In this document: piece after piece, positions 39,231 through 46,213 of the stretch
Numbering within the stretch: position 1 is the stretch's first letter
How the letters are laid out: every line of letters begins with the position of its first letter
Assembly: GCF_902652985.1 (NCBI RefSeq)
Contig: NC_047025.1
Coordinates: 12,400,001-12,464,000, forward strand
Length of the DNA stretch: 64,000 nucleotides
Origin: Pecten maximus
Taxonomy: Eukaryota
Direction: 5' to 3'
The notes under the pieces: generated by a model
The model's input: only the letters and a program-made list of their open reading frames with translations
Databases searched by the model: none
Told to the model about the DNA's origin: nothing
Translations under genes and position numbers: made by a program

Positions 39231-42200
39231 TCAGTAAGGAGAAAAGTATGAGGCCCGTCTGTACCGACTGAAACATAAAATGAAATTGAAAGTAAGAACA
39301 AGATAGATAAGCATTGATCAAAACTATTCCGGTCATCAATCTTGAACATGCAATATCACAATGTCAACACTCCTATCACTACAATACAGTAATCTATTAT
39401 CCATGTCTTTGAACACTCCCCCACCCCCTTGTGTAAAATCTCCCATTCAGTTAATCAAGGTGTTTCAAATTGGCACATCAAACAAAACATTTTCCTCTTT
39501 TCAGTGCTTTTTGTGAAGTTATCAATTCGAAAAATATAATCATCACTGCTATATAAAACACTGAAAGGACAAAGAAGTGTCATTTCAATTACCTTTCTGA
39601 CAAAACTTAATTTTTGAGATTTAAAAAAAAATCTGTTTTAATGAATGCTAAGTTTGAAGATCCTGTTAAGTTTCTAGATGACAATAATTCATTTCATAGG
39701 AGTCTATCTTGTTTCTGAAATAGAATGTGATCATACACTGTAAAATAACAATGCATAAAACAAGCATCGCCAATAGGACAGCAAGGGCCGTGCTTTGTAC
39801 CTAAAGAGGAGGACCATTGGTCTGTGTAGAGAAAGAGAATAGGGCAACCACTTGAGTCTTTATACAAAAAGAATAAGATTACTTTAAGTCATCACATTCT
39901 CAGACTGTATTCTTCACAAAAACTCCACATGTGCATACAAATAAAATTTAAAGTAGGGCTGTAACGAGTACCCGGGTGACCCCTCTTGGGTCAGTTTTGA
40001 TCCCGACCCGGGTTTGAAATTGTGTACCTGAACCCCGAAACTTTGTACTAACATAGTACTAACTACTATGGTTCACAGAAGTACACATATAGTTCAAAAT
40101 ACACAGTAGCCTTGACACACCTGAGTTATTACGGTAGAGCTGTGTTTCCAGTCATGCGCATAACAAACTGCGCGTATGTCAACCAAACAACATGACTTCC
40201 TTGATTGAAGTGCGACTCAATACAATGTCTTTTCATCAGAGTACATATCATGACTTCATCAGTAATGTTCTACTAAGAAGTAAGAACTATTCAAAGTATT
40301 CATTTAACACAAACAAATCCATGTTCATAATATCAAAGGCTTCTCCTATTCTATTCTAAATGCCCGTACAGGGCTACAACTTACAAGTCTACAGCCAACA
40401 GGACACCGGGTACGAGTCGGGTTGTAAAGACCGAGTACCCGGGGCAAAGCATTTGTACCCGTGACAGCCTTAATTTAAAGGGGTAGTAGCTTGTCAGTAC
40501 ATCCATTCCCAATATATATACTTTCAGCAGACTTGAAAAGCCCTCCAGTTGAACTCAACAATCTACAGAACAGTTGACATTTTTCCTGACCAAATGGTTT
40601 TGTAAGAGCTATTTAAATTTGTATTCAAAAACATTTGACCTGTGACCATATATAGCTGCCAATGTGTTAACGTTATTTTCACTGCATAGCCTTCGCTTCA
40701 AGAAGCTACCGCAGACATTTATATCATGCAGAGACTTCGGTTTTCATTTGAAGAAAATGCAGAAAGAAAGCTTCAACATGGCATATACATGCTAGTAGTG
40801 TGAAAGAAGAGATAACAGTGAAGACTCTGTAGATCTAACCAATAGCAGATTATATATATGACTAGCATTTCCAATGTATATACATACGTGAATCTGCCCC
40901 TTGGTCGTGGTGAGTAACCTCCATATGGAGACCCTCGGAACCCGCCACTACCTCTCCGATACCCTCGGCCACGAGGAGGTCGGTTTGTTGAACTAATGCC
41001 AGGTCGGTTTGTTCTTTTTACAGTCACCTACAAAACGACAGCTTGTGTTTAAAATTTCAACAAGTTCAAGATGGCAATTTGCCAATGCAACATTTTCACT
41101 TATAAACAAGAACATCAATATCTCCCTCCAGTGTATGTACCCATCAACGAACATGCAGGAAACTTTAAGTTCAGATATGGCCACCATAGCAAAGTTTTGA
41201 TCAACAATTTTCAACATAACACTGATCCTCACAATGTCTTACAGACTGCCACAAATTATAACTATCCACAAAGCTAGAAATGTGCCCTGAATCACAAGTA
41301 TGTTTACCTTAATTTGTCTTCCCCTAAACAGTGAATCGTCCAGCGCTTGTGCTGTGGCTACAGAGTCTTTATCAGCAAATTCTACATATGCAAAGCTGTA
41401 AAATAAACAAAGGCACTTACTTAATGAAGCAATAATTTACAGAAAATTGTGTGATTATAGAATTGAATTTACCGCTTGCTAGAACGTTAATGAAATTACA
41501 TACAAGCCAGGTTGCTTAACAAAAGGACTTCATTTTCTAATTAACATGTAAACAAGTAACACTCGACAGAAAAATATCAGTTGTGTTGGAGTCAGGTTAC
41601 AAGGTGGGGGTCAGACTAGGGGGTGGGGGTCAGGTTAGGGGGCGAGGGTCAGGTTAGGGGCTGGGGGTCAGGTTAGGGGGTAGGGGTCAGGTTAGGGGGT
41701 AGAGGTCAGGTTAAGGGGTGGGGTCAGGTTAAGGGCTGGGTGTCTTACCCTTTAGGATGTCCTGTAAATTTATCGCATAAAATTGTCACTCTGTTCACGG
41801 ATCCACAACCATGGAAGTGCTGTTCCAGTTCTTCAGCTGTAGCTCCATAATCTACCTAAAATGATGAAAAAGCTATGAAGAATACCTGTTTAGCGCACCA
41901 GAGATGCACACCATTATCATATTCCCTACCAAAACTCATGTCTTACATTACAGCTATTTCAAAACATTTGTTGGGGAGTGGGGACTATATTCGATATTCA
42001 AAAGTTTTCCTTGGACCCAATAATATATACAATTCAACAACTGACACATATTGATTAAAACAGTTGCACTCCTATATATAGCTAAACAGTAAACACATTC
42101 AATTTTTAGTATTTAAGATCATGAAGATTTGGGTTTTGTACTCCTTATGTTATATTCATATTATATGCAACACACAACTCTTAATCAGAGACTTTTAGGT

Positions 42201-45200
42201 TGTGTTAAAATATAAAATTCTTTTCTCTATAAAAATATACTTAATAATGCATTGTATTCAAGATCAGCTGCAAGTTGAAATCATCACTACAGCGTGTAGC
42301 TCCTTAGTCTAACATGTAATGAACATCATCTCTTGAATACCAATGTGTGAAGTATTTATAGCTTATCCATCATGTCTGTAATATATGTACTATTCTAAAG
42401 TCTGTCTATCAAATGTTTCTGTGTTTCAAATACCAGTTTATAGTGGCATTTATCAATATTTTCTTCTTCATAATACAAACTCTAGTATGAATTCAATAGT
42501 TCATAATAAAACTCATTGTACTCCCTAAATTTAAGCCTTGTTTTGGTTCAAGATCAGCTCAGGTTAAAATCATTGAATGAAACTCTTTAGTCTAACATGT
42601 GGAAACATCATTTCTCAAACCAAACAAAGTCACAAAATCTTTTTTTTTTAATGAGTCTTGTGACAAATGAGCTACTGTAAGTACAGAAGAAGACCAGAGA
42701 AGTATATACAATTTCAACATAATTGTAAACAGATCCATACAGCGGTTCAACCAATTGTAGACTACACCAACTTGAGTTACTTCAGGACCAGTCAGCAAAA
42801 GACCTCACTCAAGAGTATTCAGTTCATCACTTACAATCACAACATGCTTATTTTCAATAACAAGGCTATTATATATATCAGCGTCATAAATCAGTGATTA
42901 TAGTCATAGATTTCTATTGATATTTTATACATAAAGATACATATCTTAACAAATCTGAATTATGGTTCAAGATCAGTGAAAGTTTAAATCATAGCCATAT
43001 CACAGCTCTTTAGTCTAACATGTGTAAACATCATGTCCTGAACCATACTGTCCATTAGATAGTTGTACATTGTCGGTTAGCTTGTATGTAAATAGATTTT
43101 AAATCCAACATCCAAACTGAAGCTATGCAGGTAATACAATTACAAATAAATCAATTTCCTATACTCCGAGTAGACATAAACTAGGGCTATTCCTTTATAA
43201 TATAAAAGCATCCCTATAGCTTTTGAAATTAAGACAGGACCCCAATTATTTTCAAGAATTTCATCTGAACTATACAAAAAGGACCCCCCCCCCCCCCCCC
43301 CCCCCATTTACAAAATTAGCCAGTGTGAAACCCAAGCATACAGTTGTATATGATTTTTTTAGTTCCTATTCATAGTATTCTATTAATGTAACAAACTTTC
43401 AAAAATAACAAATTTTTATCTGAATGCCTTGAACTTATTTCAATTTTACAAATCAGTGTTTTTTGTCTTTTTAAAACTTCGTTGAATTCTTTTAACCAAT
43501 GAGAGAAATGAAGATTGGTTCAAGATCAGCAAAGTGTTGAAATCATAGCTACTGTGTAACTCTTTAGTCTAACATGTGTAAAACATCATCTCCTGAACCA
43601 TCTCACAAGTTTGAATACAACTTTCTGCTACAAGCACTGGCATAACCTTCCACTCATATCAGAATCAAAATGATGATAATACTAATATTGAAACCAAAAT
43701 AAAAGATGGACCAGGATTTCCATGCCGCTAAAGACTGTACAGTACGTCACATGTACGCCAGAAGCTGTCCAGGATGGAAAATGTGACGACAATACTTAGA
43801 AGTTTAGTTGCCATTCATAGTATTCTATTCATAAAACAAACTTTCAAAAATAGCAAATGTTTATCTTAATGCCTTGAACTAATTTCAATTTTACAAATAA
43901 TTGCTTACTATTTATAAAAACTTTGTGGAATTCTTTGAAAAAATATATACTTTATAAGATAGACATTGATGACAGTGAGAGAAATGAAGATTGGTTCAAG
44001 ATCAGCAAAGTGTTGAAATCATAGCTACCGTGTAGCTCTTTAGTCTAACATGTGTAAAACATCATCTCCTGAACCATCTCACAAGTTTGAATACAACTTT
44101 CTGCTACAAGCACTGGCATAAACTTCAACTCATATCAGAAGCGAAATAGTGAAGATACTAATATTAAAACCAAAACAAAAGACTGTACAGTGCGTCACAT
44201 GTATGCCAGAAGCTGTCTAGGACGGCAAATGTAACGACAATACTCCAATGGATTCCACAACGGGTTTCTTTTTGTAACTTACATTTCCAACATAAACCGA
44301 TCTGTTATCAGCTTCAAGTTTTTCTTCAACTGTAGGGAATCCAGCTGTGGGGAAAAAAATCAATAGCATTTAACATTAAAATGTAAATTTGTACTCTGTT
44401 ATTGAACTAATAGTGTACTTACAAAATCTAAACTTGGCAATACATATTTAATTCTCATTCCTCTAGTCATTCCTTCAACCTACAGCTTACTATTATACTA
44501 TTTGGACTTTTAAATTAATCTTTGTTTTTGTGATTAATAGGAATCTGGAAAACTAAATGAAAGCTGACATCAAATATAAAGTAAAAGGAACAAGTATTTA
44601 TCCTTTCCAAATCTCACAAGTTTTAATAGAATACCAATGCTTCCTCCGAAATAAAATACATATTATGAATTATTACTTTTGAACACCATTTTGACACTCA
44701 GTCAAAGATTTATTTCCTTGAAAAAGGGTAGGGGCACCCTTATTAGGGCAGGCACCCTTATTAGGTCAAATACGGTATTTGTAAACATTATCTCATTTGT
44801 TGGTGATGTATACCAGCAGTGGTGGCTGTTGTTGGGGAGGTGATGTTCATTTGTTTTTCCACTTCATTCTGCATTTCTTTCAATTTCTCTGCTTCCTCTT
44901 CCATCTCTTTCACACGGGCCTTGATAGCCTCCAACTCCTAAAATATAAATCAGAAACGTTGAATAATTGTTTACTATATCAGGTGGGGGAAACCACCAAC
45001 TTGTGTATAATACCAGCCTAAGCTTTTTCTTAGGGCCACTAAAGGCACTTATAGCATACGCAGGATGGCAGTATATATCAATTCTAAAGAATATATCATA
45101 CCATCTCCTTTGATTCCAACATTTTGTTTGCCGAGAATTCCGTTTTAAATCACCCTGTCAAGCCTATACATATCAAGACACTAATTTGGAGACAAGGGCT

Positions 45201-46213
45201 CTTTGTAATAGTTTTGTCAGTTATTGTGGGAACACTAAAACCAAGTCCAGATGATTCAGATTATCGATAGTCAAAATTATTTGGACTGTAATTGAAACTG
45301 TAACGTAACAAAAGCAACAGATGAATTAAAATCTCATTGTTTTTGGGCGGTGTATACGTACTTGGCCATTGAAATTATATCATTTTCAGGGACTGGGATA
45401 GAATTTTTAGAGCCACTAAGCATTGTGCCTGGTGACAATAGTACAAGCCTCGCACTATTTGAAATCCACTCGGCACCAAATAACAAACTTGTAATTTCAC
45501 CTAGATTTAAGTTTAGACTTTATTATAATTATTGCACATGTCTTTGTGTGTGCATAAATCTAAGTATACATTAATTAAGTTAATAAGATTTTTGTTATGA
45601 AATAAAGAAAACGACAAAATCATATTTTTAATTTTTTAATTTCACAAAAATTTTGTTGTTAGGTGAGCTTGATTTTTGTGTTTAATATGTCATTAGGCGA
45701 GCTGATTTTTCTATGATTTTGTGTAATATGCAGAGTCGTTGGATTATTTTTTCCATATCAATTTATTTCAAATGTTCAAACACTTCCTGTGTCCATTACA
45801 TTTGATTTTACATGTTTCATTGTTTGTATACTAAAATTGTATATCAAAAGAGGAAGACGCTGGGGTTAGGTTAAAATATATGTGGACCTGCTGCTAGTTG
45901 ACAATTGTCTGAATTAGGCCAAATTACGTTTTGGCTGCACAACTACGTATACACACTAGACTAGTTATTGATCCCCAATTTTAAACTATCGAAAATGGAT
46001 TTGCGATTACATTCCGGAGTCATTTTAACACAAATCGAATGCCTTTAAAGCATCTTGACACCTTCCTGACTTACATACCGGATCCTCCACGGCCGACTCG
46101 TCTTGGTTTGTTGCTGTAGCATCATGATCACCGTCTCCTCCTTCAAACTGCTGTGCGTCCGGATCGAAATCCGTTACAGAATCATCTGCGAAATCAGGTT
46201 CTTTATCGGCCAT
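39231..46213 (-). CDS. PABPN1: Nuclear poly(A)-binding protein (PABPN1/PABP2), 230 aa
   Basis: Exons 46213-46079, 44937-44814, 44344-44283, 41855-41749, 41395-41308, 41027-40888, 39267-39231 total 693 nt. Hallmarks [96 protein letters not shown]-rich tail, C-terminal YFSPY*. Probable 5'UTR intron 46227-46347. Confidence 0.97.
39954..40472. mobile_element. hAT-type MITE in the PABPN1 terminal intron
   Basis: Ends TAGGGCTGTAACG / CGTGACAGCCTTA; exact 8-bp TSD ATTTAAAG at 39946-39953 and 40473-40480; subterminal ACCCG repeats. Confidence 0.9.
41591..41740. repeat. G-rich ~18-bp minisatellite (GGTCAGGTTAGGGGGTGG), about 8 copies
   Basis: Directly visible; abuts the 5' splice site at 41748. Confidence 0.9.
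42254..42340 (-). ncRNA. Box C/D snoRNA, SNORD104/snR58-like, copy 1
   Basis: GTATTCAAGA-G-ATGATG(C)-TTCATT-ACATGTTAGACT(guide)-A-AGGA(D')-GCTACA CGC TGTAGT-G-ATGATT(C')-TCAACTTGCAG-CTGA(D)-TCTTGAATAC; perfect 10-bp terminal stem; sense to the host gene. Confidence 0.85.
42542..42624 (-). ncRNA. Box C/D snoRNA, SNORD104/snR58-like, copy 2
   Basis: TTTGGTTTGAGA-A-ATGATG-TTTC-CACATGTTAGACT-A-AAGA-GTTTCATTCA-ATGATT-TTAACCTGAG-CTGA-TCTTGAACCAAA; 12-bp stem with two G.U pairs. Confidence 0.85.
42961..43047 (-). ncRNA. Box C/D snoRNA, SNORD104/snR58-like, copy 3
   Basis: TATGGTTCAGGA-C-ATGATG-TTTA-CACATGTTAGACT-A-AAGA-GCTGTGATATGGCT-ATGATT-TAAACTTTCA-CTGA-TCTTGAACCATA; 12-bp terminal stem. Confidence 0.88.
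43516..43600 (-). ncRNA. Box C/D snoRNA, SNORD104/snR58-like, copy 4
   Basis: TGGTTCAGGA-G-ATGATG-TTTTA-CACATGTTAGACT-A-AAGA-GTTACACAGTAGCT-ATGATT-TCAACACTTTG-CTGA-TCTTGAACCA. Confidence 0.88.
43992..44076 (-). ncRNA. Box C/D snoRNA, SNORD104/snR58-like, copy 5
   Basis: Same as copy 4 except two internal-stem-loop bases (GCTACACGGTAGCT). Confidence 0.88.

Follow-up and report, generated by a model that had tools for sequence, protein, structure and literature searches.

We conclude that an intron of the PABPN1 homologue of Pecten maximus very probably carries a five-member family of box C/D guide snoRNAs, duplicated in tandem within that intron. Box C/D snoRNAs are stable RNAs of about 70-90 nt that are bound by fibrillarin, Nop56, Nop58 and 15.5K, and they have a C box (consensus RUGAUGA) near the 5' end and a D box (CUGA) near the 3' end. 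The analysis covered a window of 64,000 nt (contig NC_047025.1, positions 12,400,001 to 12,464,000), and all positions given here are those of the window. All five units would be transcribed within the PABPN1 pre-mRNA, in the following order.

Anatomy of the five units

43992..44076, minus strand: unit u5, transcribed first, with the 5' splice site 206 nt away; 111 bits with covariance model R1
43516..43600, minus strand: unit u4, 98% identical to u5; 109.6 bits with R1
42961..43046, minus strand: unit u3, 12-bp stem, fold z -3.2; 99.7 bits with R1
42542..42625, minus strand: unit u2, 12-bp stem including two G.U pairs; 82.2 bits with R1
42254..42340, minus strand: unit u1, transcribed last, with the 3' splice site 398 nt downstream; 91.6 bits with R1

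The units are 84-87 nt long (n = 5) and lie on the minus strand, sense to the PABPN1 homologue. All five were found where a sequence-only reading had placed their starts (42254, 42542, 42961, 43516 and 43992), and its description of them as sense-strand is correct relative to the host, which is also on the minus strand. Every unit has the C box AUGAUGU, which matches six of seven consensus positions, and the D box CUGA. The C' box AUGAUUU is invariant across the units at all seven positions, and the D' box is degenerate, reading AAGA or AGGA, in which GA alone is canonical. A terminal stem of 10-13 bp is present in the single-sequence folds of all five, with three compensatory pairs in u1 relative to the other units. 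This stem would join the C box and D box and allow assembly of the snoRNP.

Within the window, this combination of features is confined to the five units. A scan of the 64 kb for a C box, a D box and a stem of at least 7 bp returned exactly these five, compared to zero or one in 20 shuffles, and the 12-mer ACATGTTAGACT occurs five times, always on the minus strand, a count reached by none of 100 shuffles. No sixth unit was found in the window by R1 with filters off. A match of 21 nt within the upstream intron (44611-44631) was rejected as a sixth unit because it does not extend into a unit.

The host intron and its transcripts

40890..46213, minus strand: PABPN1-like coding exons, extent read from the ORF list and the sequence
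44283..44345, minus strand: upstream host exon, from its translation; covered by spliced contigs
41856..44282, minus strand: intron 3 of the PABPN1 homologue, 2,427 nt, housing all five units; from spliced contigs
41749..41855, minus strand: downstream host exon, part of the RRM, from its translation and a match to Pfam RRM_1 (E 7.6e-5)

Host protein searches were run exon by exon, each exon singly. The downstream exon matches chains 3ucg and 3b4d of polyadenylate-binding protein 2 in the PDB (E about 1e-19) and is present in a single copy in the genome; used as a query, this RRM exon matched many ORF calls of the exon-plus-intron kind in other animals. The first host exon begins MADKEPDF at 46213, and an arginine- and glycine-rich exon finishes near 40890. 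In translation, the exons on either side of the five-unit intron read ..VYVGN and VDYGATAEE.., respectively. Four runs, each from an independent study, contain a spliced contig that skips exactly 41856-44282 and has minus-strand GT..AG ends, confirming the intron ends that had been read from the sequence. The loose ends of the spliced contigs agree with the neighbouring PABPN1 exons, and the contigs of the four studies indicate that the host PABPN1 mRNA is expressed and spliced. These transcript data are assembled contigs, which resolve neither small RNAs nor RNA ends and in which gaps prove nothing. Five units in one spliced intron, on the strand of the host, constitute an intronic snoRNA gene cluster, defined as at least two snoRNA genes in such an arrangement. 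The literature that we searched contained no description of PABPN1 as a snoRNA host.

Conservation, covariation and duplication history

The pattern of change among the copies follows the functional anatomy of a box C/D snoRNA. Invariant columns make up 33 of 36 in the functional elements compared to 6 of 31 in the linkers (p 1.4e-9). Over both helices, 93% of cells are paired, compared to 27-42% with the partners slid, and six pairs have changed on both sides; for the terminal helix, 95% of cells are paired and five pairs have changed on both sides. Identity from unit to unit is 80-98% (z 13-38), and the 150-nt flanks are no more alike than background (z -1.1 to 1.9), apart from those of copies 4 and 5. 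The compensatory changes in the terminal stems and the divergence of all spacers except those of copies 4 and 5 had been proposed earlier, and both withstood this analysis. So did the proposal of purifying selection, given that the boxes and guide are nearly invariant and that linkers and spacers have diverged to background levels. Such comparisons among the copies support the interpretation that the five units are box C/D snoRNA paralogues under purifying selection.

Stepwise tandem duplication inside the intron would have given rise to the five snoRNA genes. The most recent step left a recognizable repeat:

43358..44250, minus strand: youngest tandem duplication, period about 445-476 nt, from which u4, u5 and their flanks derive

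Direct-repeat families D2, D4 and D8 within this segment are 88-94% identical, and the flank alignments agree. Between u4 and u5, the youngest pair, 2 of 85 sites have changed, compared to 44 of 263 in their flanks (Fisher p 3e-4); u1 is the most diverged copy.

Duplicated snoRNAs are often not expressed (SnoBIRD, PMC12309372), and it could be that one or two copies are functional and the rest are young silent duplicates, or snoRNA pseudogenes, that look intact. The recent origin of the u4 and u5 pair is compatible with this explanation, as is u2, which is without the internal D'-C' hairpin and has the weakest fold of the units (z -0.6). However, the flanks of u1, u2 and u3 are unalignable, marking these copies as old, yet every box, guide and compensated stem has been kept. 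In addition, none of the marks of a snoRNA pseudogene, namely mutated boxes, a weak terminal stem and a silent host, is seen here, the host being expressed. We therefore regard silent duplicates as quite improbable and favor a family in which all five members are constrained.

The guide and its predicted target

In each member of this family, an element of 12-13 nt upstream of the degenerate D' box would pair with 28S rRNA. With the 28S rRNA encoded in this genome, the guide forms 12-13 Watson-Crick pairs, the duplex of u5 being 13 nt long, and its partner there is 5'-AGUCUAACAUGU(G)-3'. This exceeds the minimum of 10 nt expected of a box C/D antisense element adjoining D or D'. The target GGAGTCTAACATGT is located in the tandem rDNA, at a locus that Rfam labels LSU rRNA, which upholds the earlier suggestion that the 12-mer is antisense to LSU rRNA. 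Counting upstream from D', the fifth nucleotide is a G that faces the C of AGUC*U, and under the fifth-nucleotide rule this C would receive 2'-O-methylation by fibrillarin. The predicted methylation residue is the C in GGAGUC*UAACAUGUG (GGAGUC*UAAC) of LSU rRNA; an alternative reading of the D' box as CUAA would shift the predicted target by two residues downstream, to the second A of CUAAC. In the segment of 10-11 nt upstream of the D box, no second guide was found; its sequence differs from copy to copy, and its complementarity to rRNA is scattered and reaches 7-9 nt at most.

The pairing supports a predicted target at the C of GGAGUCUAAC, the site of yeast snR58, human U104/SNORD104 and plant snoR58Y. 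U104 Cm1327, snR58 Cm661 and AtsnoR58Y Cm674 are equated in one table, and this cytidine is methylated in yeast, human and Arabidopsis (PMC3511168). The sequence-only reading had arrived at the SNORD104/snR58 cytidine by the D'+5 rule, and the guide does point there. Judged by guide complementarity alone, the units would be functionally equivalent to snR58/SNORD104. The predicted site is an ancient one, also guided by snR58, U104/SNORD104, snoR58Y/snoR64 and the fly Me28S-Cm788.

Known relatives

At gathering thresholds, no Rfam family matched anywhere in the window. An Rfam match to SNORD104/snR58 had been anticipated and did not materialize, with RF00289 and RF01199 unmatched even at E values up to 10. 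The best sub-threshold matches are to plant snoR64/Z200 (RF00267) and fly Me28S-Cm788 (RF00539), which have the same guide as the units and for both of which the gathering score is 45 bits. The top match, of u5 to snoR64, reaches 35.5 bits with an E value of 1.6e-4, which is significant for the 2.7 kb searched at a score under the gathering threshold. The plant family shares a full-length architecture with the units: terminal stem, C box, the guide CACAUGU.AGACU, D' box, internal hairpin, C' box and D box. Its D' box is CAGA, at the position of the degenerate D' of the units, and its guide has a C in place of the U found here, matching plant rRNA. Me28S-Cm788 shares a 5' module comprising the C box AUGAUGU, a short linker and the guide ..AUGUUAGACUA, and in both the D' box ends in GA (AUGA in the fly). 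The units score only 23-25 bits against this family, however, with the 3' half unaligned.

Like the units, snR58, U104/SNORD104 and Arabidopsis snoR58Y (Rfam clan CL00077) are single-guide box C/D RNAs, and the predicted target cytidine is the same (Cm661/663 for snR58, Cm1327 for U104 and Cm674 for snoR58Y). The gene arrangement differs. The yeast snR58 gene is independently transcribed and human SNORD104 is single-copy in a non-coding host, whereas the guide here occurs five-fold in one protein-coding intron. The literature searched made no mention of Me28S-C788, or of snR58 together with SNORD104 or C663.

A pattern scan of metagenomes yielded 80 loci, none with PABPN1 exons, among which one (L089) is the sole true homologue. 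This orthologue is single-copy, its stem is only 7 bp long, and an SF3B3 exon follows about 67 nt downstream.

Uniqueness in the genome

The assembly seems to hold no source of the guide other than these five copies. Further copies in the 918-Mb assembly were found neither by DNA search nor by covariance model or pattern search. The genome-wide covariance search scored 150 of about 318,000 candidates, so that diverged copies elsewhere are not strictly excluded. The guide pattern has nine other matches in the genome, a number comparable to that given by the reversed-pattern control (5+4); these loci have no snoRNA features and were rejected. A weak covariance-model match on C4 was also dismissed as an extra copy, being a palindromic repeat.

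Terminal inverted repeats of 10-13 bp and the presence of several copies could also be expected of a mobile or satellite-like repeat, such as a MITE or SINE, that resembles a snoRNA by chance. The genome-wide scatter that had been named as the sign of a MITE is absent: only five copies exist in 918 Mb, in a single intron and a single orientation, and their conservation pattern tracks snoRNA functional elements. The absence of the unit elsewhere in the assembly argues against a mobile repeat, and we give this explanation almost no credence beside a snoRNA family.

Possible routes of release from the intron

Box C/D snoRNAs canonically lie about 70 nt from the 3' splice site. The units lie 398-2,136 nt from it, and because no unit is at about 70 nt, assembly is probably stem-assisted and independent of splicing. 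The contrast with the metagenomic orthologue, with its short stem near an exon, is in keeping with long stems making up for position in this intron. In this scheme, the spacers of the excised intron would be cut endonucleolytically, and exonucleases would then trim the internal copies free. The sequence-only reading had invoked endonucleolytic cleavage or cryptic splicing, and neither gained support. The whole-intron junction was the only one seen in the contigs of the four runs, with no sign of cryptic or nested splicing, and the spacers contained no cleavage signals and no unusual processing hairpins (fold z -1.5 to +1.1, the best local hairpins at about the first percentile of shuffles).

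Another possibility is that the main stable products are of the sno-lncRNA type, trimmed to two flanking snoRNPs, instead of or besides five free snoRNAs. The default exonucleolytic pathway yields such products from two-snoRNA introns (PMC11028025). Contigs from three runs of three studies fall in the u2-u1 interval (42272-42569, 42373-42649 and 42361-42592), and the neighbouring intron stretches are bare in those runs. Yet these contigs are shallow, one of them overruns the 5' end of u2 by 24 nt, and in a fourth run other parts of the intron are covered. RNA ends are unreadable from contigs, which could represent ordinary pre-mRNA signal. We consider products of this type unlikely to predominate and retain five individually released snoRNAs as the preferred explanation.

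Intronic snoRNA clusters in other organisms and implications

"Intronic snoRNA clusters" are a standard category in reviews (PMC11028025, PMC12205218), and rice and Drosophila have them (PMC3089462), so the novelty attributed to the arrangement in the sequence-only reading was overstated. The clusters of rice and Drosophila likewise contain several snoRNA genes per intron, sense to the host. Those of Drosophila are mainly H/ACA (PMC3089462), whereas the present cluster consists of five copies of one C/D guide and is found in the protein-coding gene of a lophotrochozoan. As in this intron, more than one C/D snoRNA per intron is found in human SNHG29 (SNORD49B/A) and in the Prader-Willi sno-lncRNAs; there, snoRNA-ended long RNAs have been demonstrated, whereas here the contigs give a weak hint. 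With more than one C/D snoRNA in an intron, exonuclease trimming alone cannot free all of them (PMC11028025). The literature searched said almost nothing about the organization of molluscan snoRNAs. The packing described here is unusual for an animal, yet of a known kind, and it reveals neither a new RNA class nor a new mechanism.

A broader proposal is that within-intron tandem amplification of snoRNAs is a general habit of this genome, implying a metazoan pathway for the endonucleolytic cutting of polycistronic intronic precursors or, alternatively, the production of snoRNA-capped long RNAs; we regard this as doubtful. PABPN1 has roles in nuclear poly(A)-dependent RNA decay and in snoRNA 3' maturation. 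If snoRNA-capped RNAs came from the PABPN1 gene, a feedback loop would be conceivable.

For Pecten maximus, the analysis provides a credible gene set for a guide that dates to the last eukaryotic common ancestor. Few animal introns are known to depart from the rule of one snoRNA per intron, and this is a clear case from a lophotrochozoan. The intron could serve as a natural system for learning how several C/D snoRNPs leave one animal intron, with endonucleolytic release and the formation of snoRNA-ended long RNA as the two candidate routes. It could likewise show whether a long terminal stem can take the place of a canonical location close to the branch point.

Array intron and host gene

Five box C/D units, u1-u5 (numbered by plus-strand coordinate), lie in one intron of the PABPN1 homologue. 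The starts proposed for them by a sequence-only reading proved correct: all five are on the minus strand, and the boxes and the guide could be read in each. Transcription runs from u5 through u4, u3 and u2 to u1.

Box C/D units of the array intron (window coordinates)
42254-42340, minus strand: u1, box C/D unit, last in the transcript
42542-42625, minus strand: u2, box C/D unit without the internal hairpin
42961-43046, minus strand: u3, box C/D unit
43516-43600, minus strand: u4, box C/D unit
43992-44076, minus strand: u5, box C/D unit, first in the transcript

Read 5' to 3', a unit opens with a 5' stem arm and the C box (G/A/C)AUGAUGU, which a linker of 4-6 nt separates from the guide element (C)ACAUGUUAGACU; an A and the D' box (AAGA in u2-u5, AGGA in u1) follow. 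Next come a short internal hairpin, which u2 lacks, and the C' box AUGAUUU. A variable segment of 10-11 nt then leads to the D box CUGA and the 3' stem arm. The 12-mer ACAUGUUAGACU occurs five times in the window, always on the minus strand, a count reached by 0 of 100 shuffles. A generic scan of both strands of the 64-kb window, which required C and D boxes next to a stem of 7 bp or more, returned exactly u1-u5; the same scan on 20 shuffles gave 0-1 matches.

The exons on both sides of the array intron were translated. The downstream exon, which is single-copy in the assembly, matches Pfam RRM_1 and, at E ~1e-19, chains 3ucg and 3b4d, the RRM structure of polyadenylate-binding protein 2 (PABPN1). 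Other exons on the same strand fit the PABPN1 layout of an acidic N-terminus, coiled coil, RRM and arginine-/glycine-rich tail. The proposed intron (41856-44282, GT..AG, minus strand) was confirmed by assembled contigs from four public runs in four studies, which skip exactly 2,427 nt. Because all four hold this junction, the intron is real and its PABPN1 host is expressed. The next PABPN1 intron has its 5' splice site at 41748, and a few bases past it a 19-nt minisatellite begins (41588-41742; plus-strand GGGGTCAGGTTAGGGGGTN, 8 or more repeats). In the upstream intron, 44611-44631 matches the sequence just 5' of u4 and u5 at 19 of 21 nt without extending into a unit, and could be an older duplication remnant or chance (E 0.009, small search).

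Constraint on the units

Pairwise identity between units is 80-91%, rising to 98% for u4/u5 (alignment z 13-38). As the earlier reading held, the spacers have diverged except at copies 4 and 5: the 150-nt flanks on either side show only background similarity (z -1.1 to 1.9) apart from the young u4/u5 duplication. Even in that pair, 2 of 85 positions differ within the unit, and 44 of 263 flanking positions differ outside it (Fisher p 3e-4). Of the 36 columns in the C, guide, D', C' and D elements, 33 are invariant, compared to 6 of 31 for the linkers, internal hairpin and C'-D spacer (p 1.4e-9). The named structure has 93% of its cells paired, compared to 27-42% when partners are slid by 1-3 columns, and the terminal stem is predicted in all five single-sequence folds. 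Compensatory stem changes, also claimed previously, were found as changes on both sides at six pairs, including the three already named, at which u1 has A-U/U-A/G-C and the other units have G-C/G-C/U-A. Judged from these alignments, the pattern is that expected of purifying selection on a working C/D snoRNA, which supports the selection proposed earlier. Blanket gene conversion would not be expected to produce such a pattern.

Guide, target and family membership

The assembly has 52 occurrences of the target GGAGTCTAACATGT. Forty-nine are on small contigs, mostly in tandem at ~7.2 kb spacing, and the remaining three are single matches on large contigs. One tandem locus is LSU and 5.8S rRNA by Rfam and reads ..ACCCGUCUUGAAACACGGACCAAGGAGUCUAACAUGUGCGCGAGUC... 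Aligned to this 28S, the guide forms 13 Watson-Crick pairs in u2-u5 and 12 plus one G.U in u1, as anticipated for a guide antisense to the organism's own LSU rRNA. With D' taken as AAGA/AGGA, the fifth nucleotide upstream of D' is a G opposite the C of AGUC*U. The same geometry is seen in sub-threshold Rfam relatives, plant snoR64/Z200 (GACUU-CAGA) and fly Me28S-Cm788 (GACUA-AUGA). This agrees with the snR58/SNORD104 cytidine as the predicted target; a published comparative table lists the site as Cm674 (AtsnoR58Y), Cm1327 (U104, RF00289) and Cm661 (snR58, RF01199), and dates it back to the last eukaryotic common ancestor (PMC3511168). A second guide was sought in the C'-D segment, which is short, copy-variable and without meaningful rRNA match; the RNA therefore carries one guide.

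No Rfam family reached its gathering score for the units. The best match in E-value mode was snoR64/Z200 (35.5 bits against a gathering score of 45, E 1.6e-4 in 2.7 kb), and Me28S-Cm788, with a gathering score of 45 as well, reached 25 bits. Even in this mode there was no match to the models of SNORD104 and snR58, which the sequence-only reading had put forward for comparison. Because no gathering score was reached, the units are filed as box C/D snoRNAs and not as model members. By guide and target they can be regarded as functional equivalents of the snR58/U104 group, though not members by model score, and are probably its orthologues.

Copy number in the genome

A DNA search of the 918-Mb assembly found the unit only at the u1-u5 sites. 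R1, a covariance model made from u1-u5, recovered the same five units in the window with filters off, and again over the whole genome, where 150 of ~318,000 first-look candidates were scored and the count is a lower bound. One weak extra R1 match was a palindromic repeat. The pattern of C-box core plus guide gave 14 genome matches, u1-u5 and nine others, none of which resembles a snoRNA; the reversed-pattern control also gave nine. The possibility of a MITE-like repeat, raised earlier, is rejected because the DNA search, the R1 search with its 150 scored candidates and the pattern search place the unit in this intron alone. As far as these searches reach, the assembly has no source of this guide other than the PABPN1 intron. 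At L023:1491-1598, on C10 (~17.7243 Mb), UGAUGU is followed by CACAUGUUAGACUGA, the same 13-nt guide beside a canonical CUGA. This locus has no convincing D box or terminal stem and scores 16 bits with R1, and its guide match is probably due to chance.

RNA contigs and release from the intron

Low-depth contigs from three runs in three studies cover the u2-u1 interval (42272-42569, 42373-42649 and 42361-42592); these runs have no contig over adjoining intron stretches, and assembled contigs cannot show RNA ends. Contigs of a fourth run cover 41885-42431 and 42978-43242. The u2-u1 signal could represent a snoRNA-ended fragment, a processing intermediate or simply pre-mRNA. The u4-u3 spacer contains a homopolymer at 43276-43300 (poly-C on the plus strand, poly-G in the transcript), and very deep short contigs there in run X1 were dismissed as a low-complexity artefact, not expression.

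Reviews give as the standard animal route that the intron is spliced out and debranched and then trimmed by exonucleases as far as the snoRNP borders, an intron mostly holding a single snoRNA; splicing-independent production is known for some snoRNAs, and snoRNA-ended long RNAs are possible from an intron with two (PMC11028025; PMC7038934). With five units, the product of trimming alone would be a long RNA with u5 and u1 at its ends, so endonucleolytic cuts would be needed to free the inner copies. The spacers contain no conserved or unusually stable hairpins, and nested splicing was absent from the contigs of the four runs, in which the whole-intron junction is the only one.

The only true homologue in a metagenome scan (L089:565-637, contig Ga0123355_10053968; 41.5 bits) is an orthologue with the same guide, whose D' box is AUGA and whose stem has 7 bp. 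Its 6.5-kb contig carries one copy, ~67 nt ahead of an exon that belongs to an SF3B3 homologue. This distance is reportedly the canonical snoRNA position, from the work of Hirose and Steitz. In contrast, the 3' ends of u1-u5 lie 398, 686, 1,105, 1,660 and 2,136 nt upstream of the 3' splice site, respectively, and their stems are 10-13 bp. This comparison lends some indirect support to stem-assisted assembly of u1-u5.

snoRNA arrays and mobility

"Intronic snoRNA clusters" are a standard review category (PMC11028025, PMC12205218). PMC3089462 cites examples from rice and Drosophila, those of the fly being mainly H/ACA by its description. The papers searched have almost nothing on molluscan snoRNA gene organization, and none names PABPN1 as host of a snoRNA. 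Elsewhere in the assembly, L148:1993-4971 (C11, ~17.612-17.615 Mb) contains five H/ACA-like units of ~140 nt at 360-950 nt spacing, each with a hairpin, AUAUCA hinge, hairpin and ACA; their spacers have diverged, and the units have no Rfam match. The PABPN1 array may thus be one case of a recurring trait of the genome, and its snoRNA belongs to a known ancient group. The host of this snoRNA differs between lineages, PABPN1 here and the SF3B3 homologue on the metagenome contig, which fits what is known of snoRNA mobility (PMC3511168).
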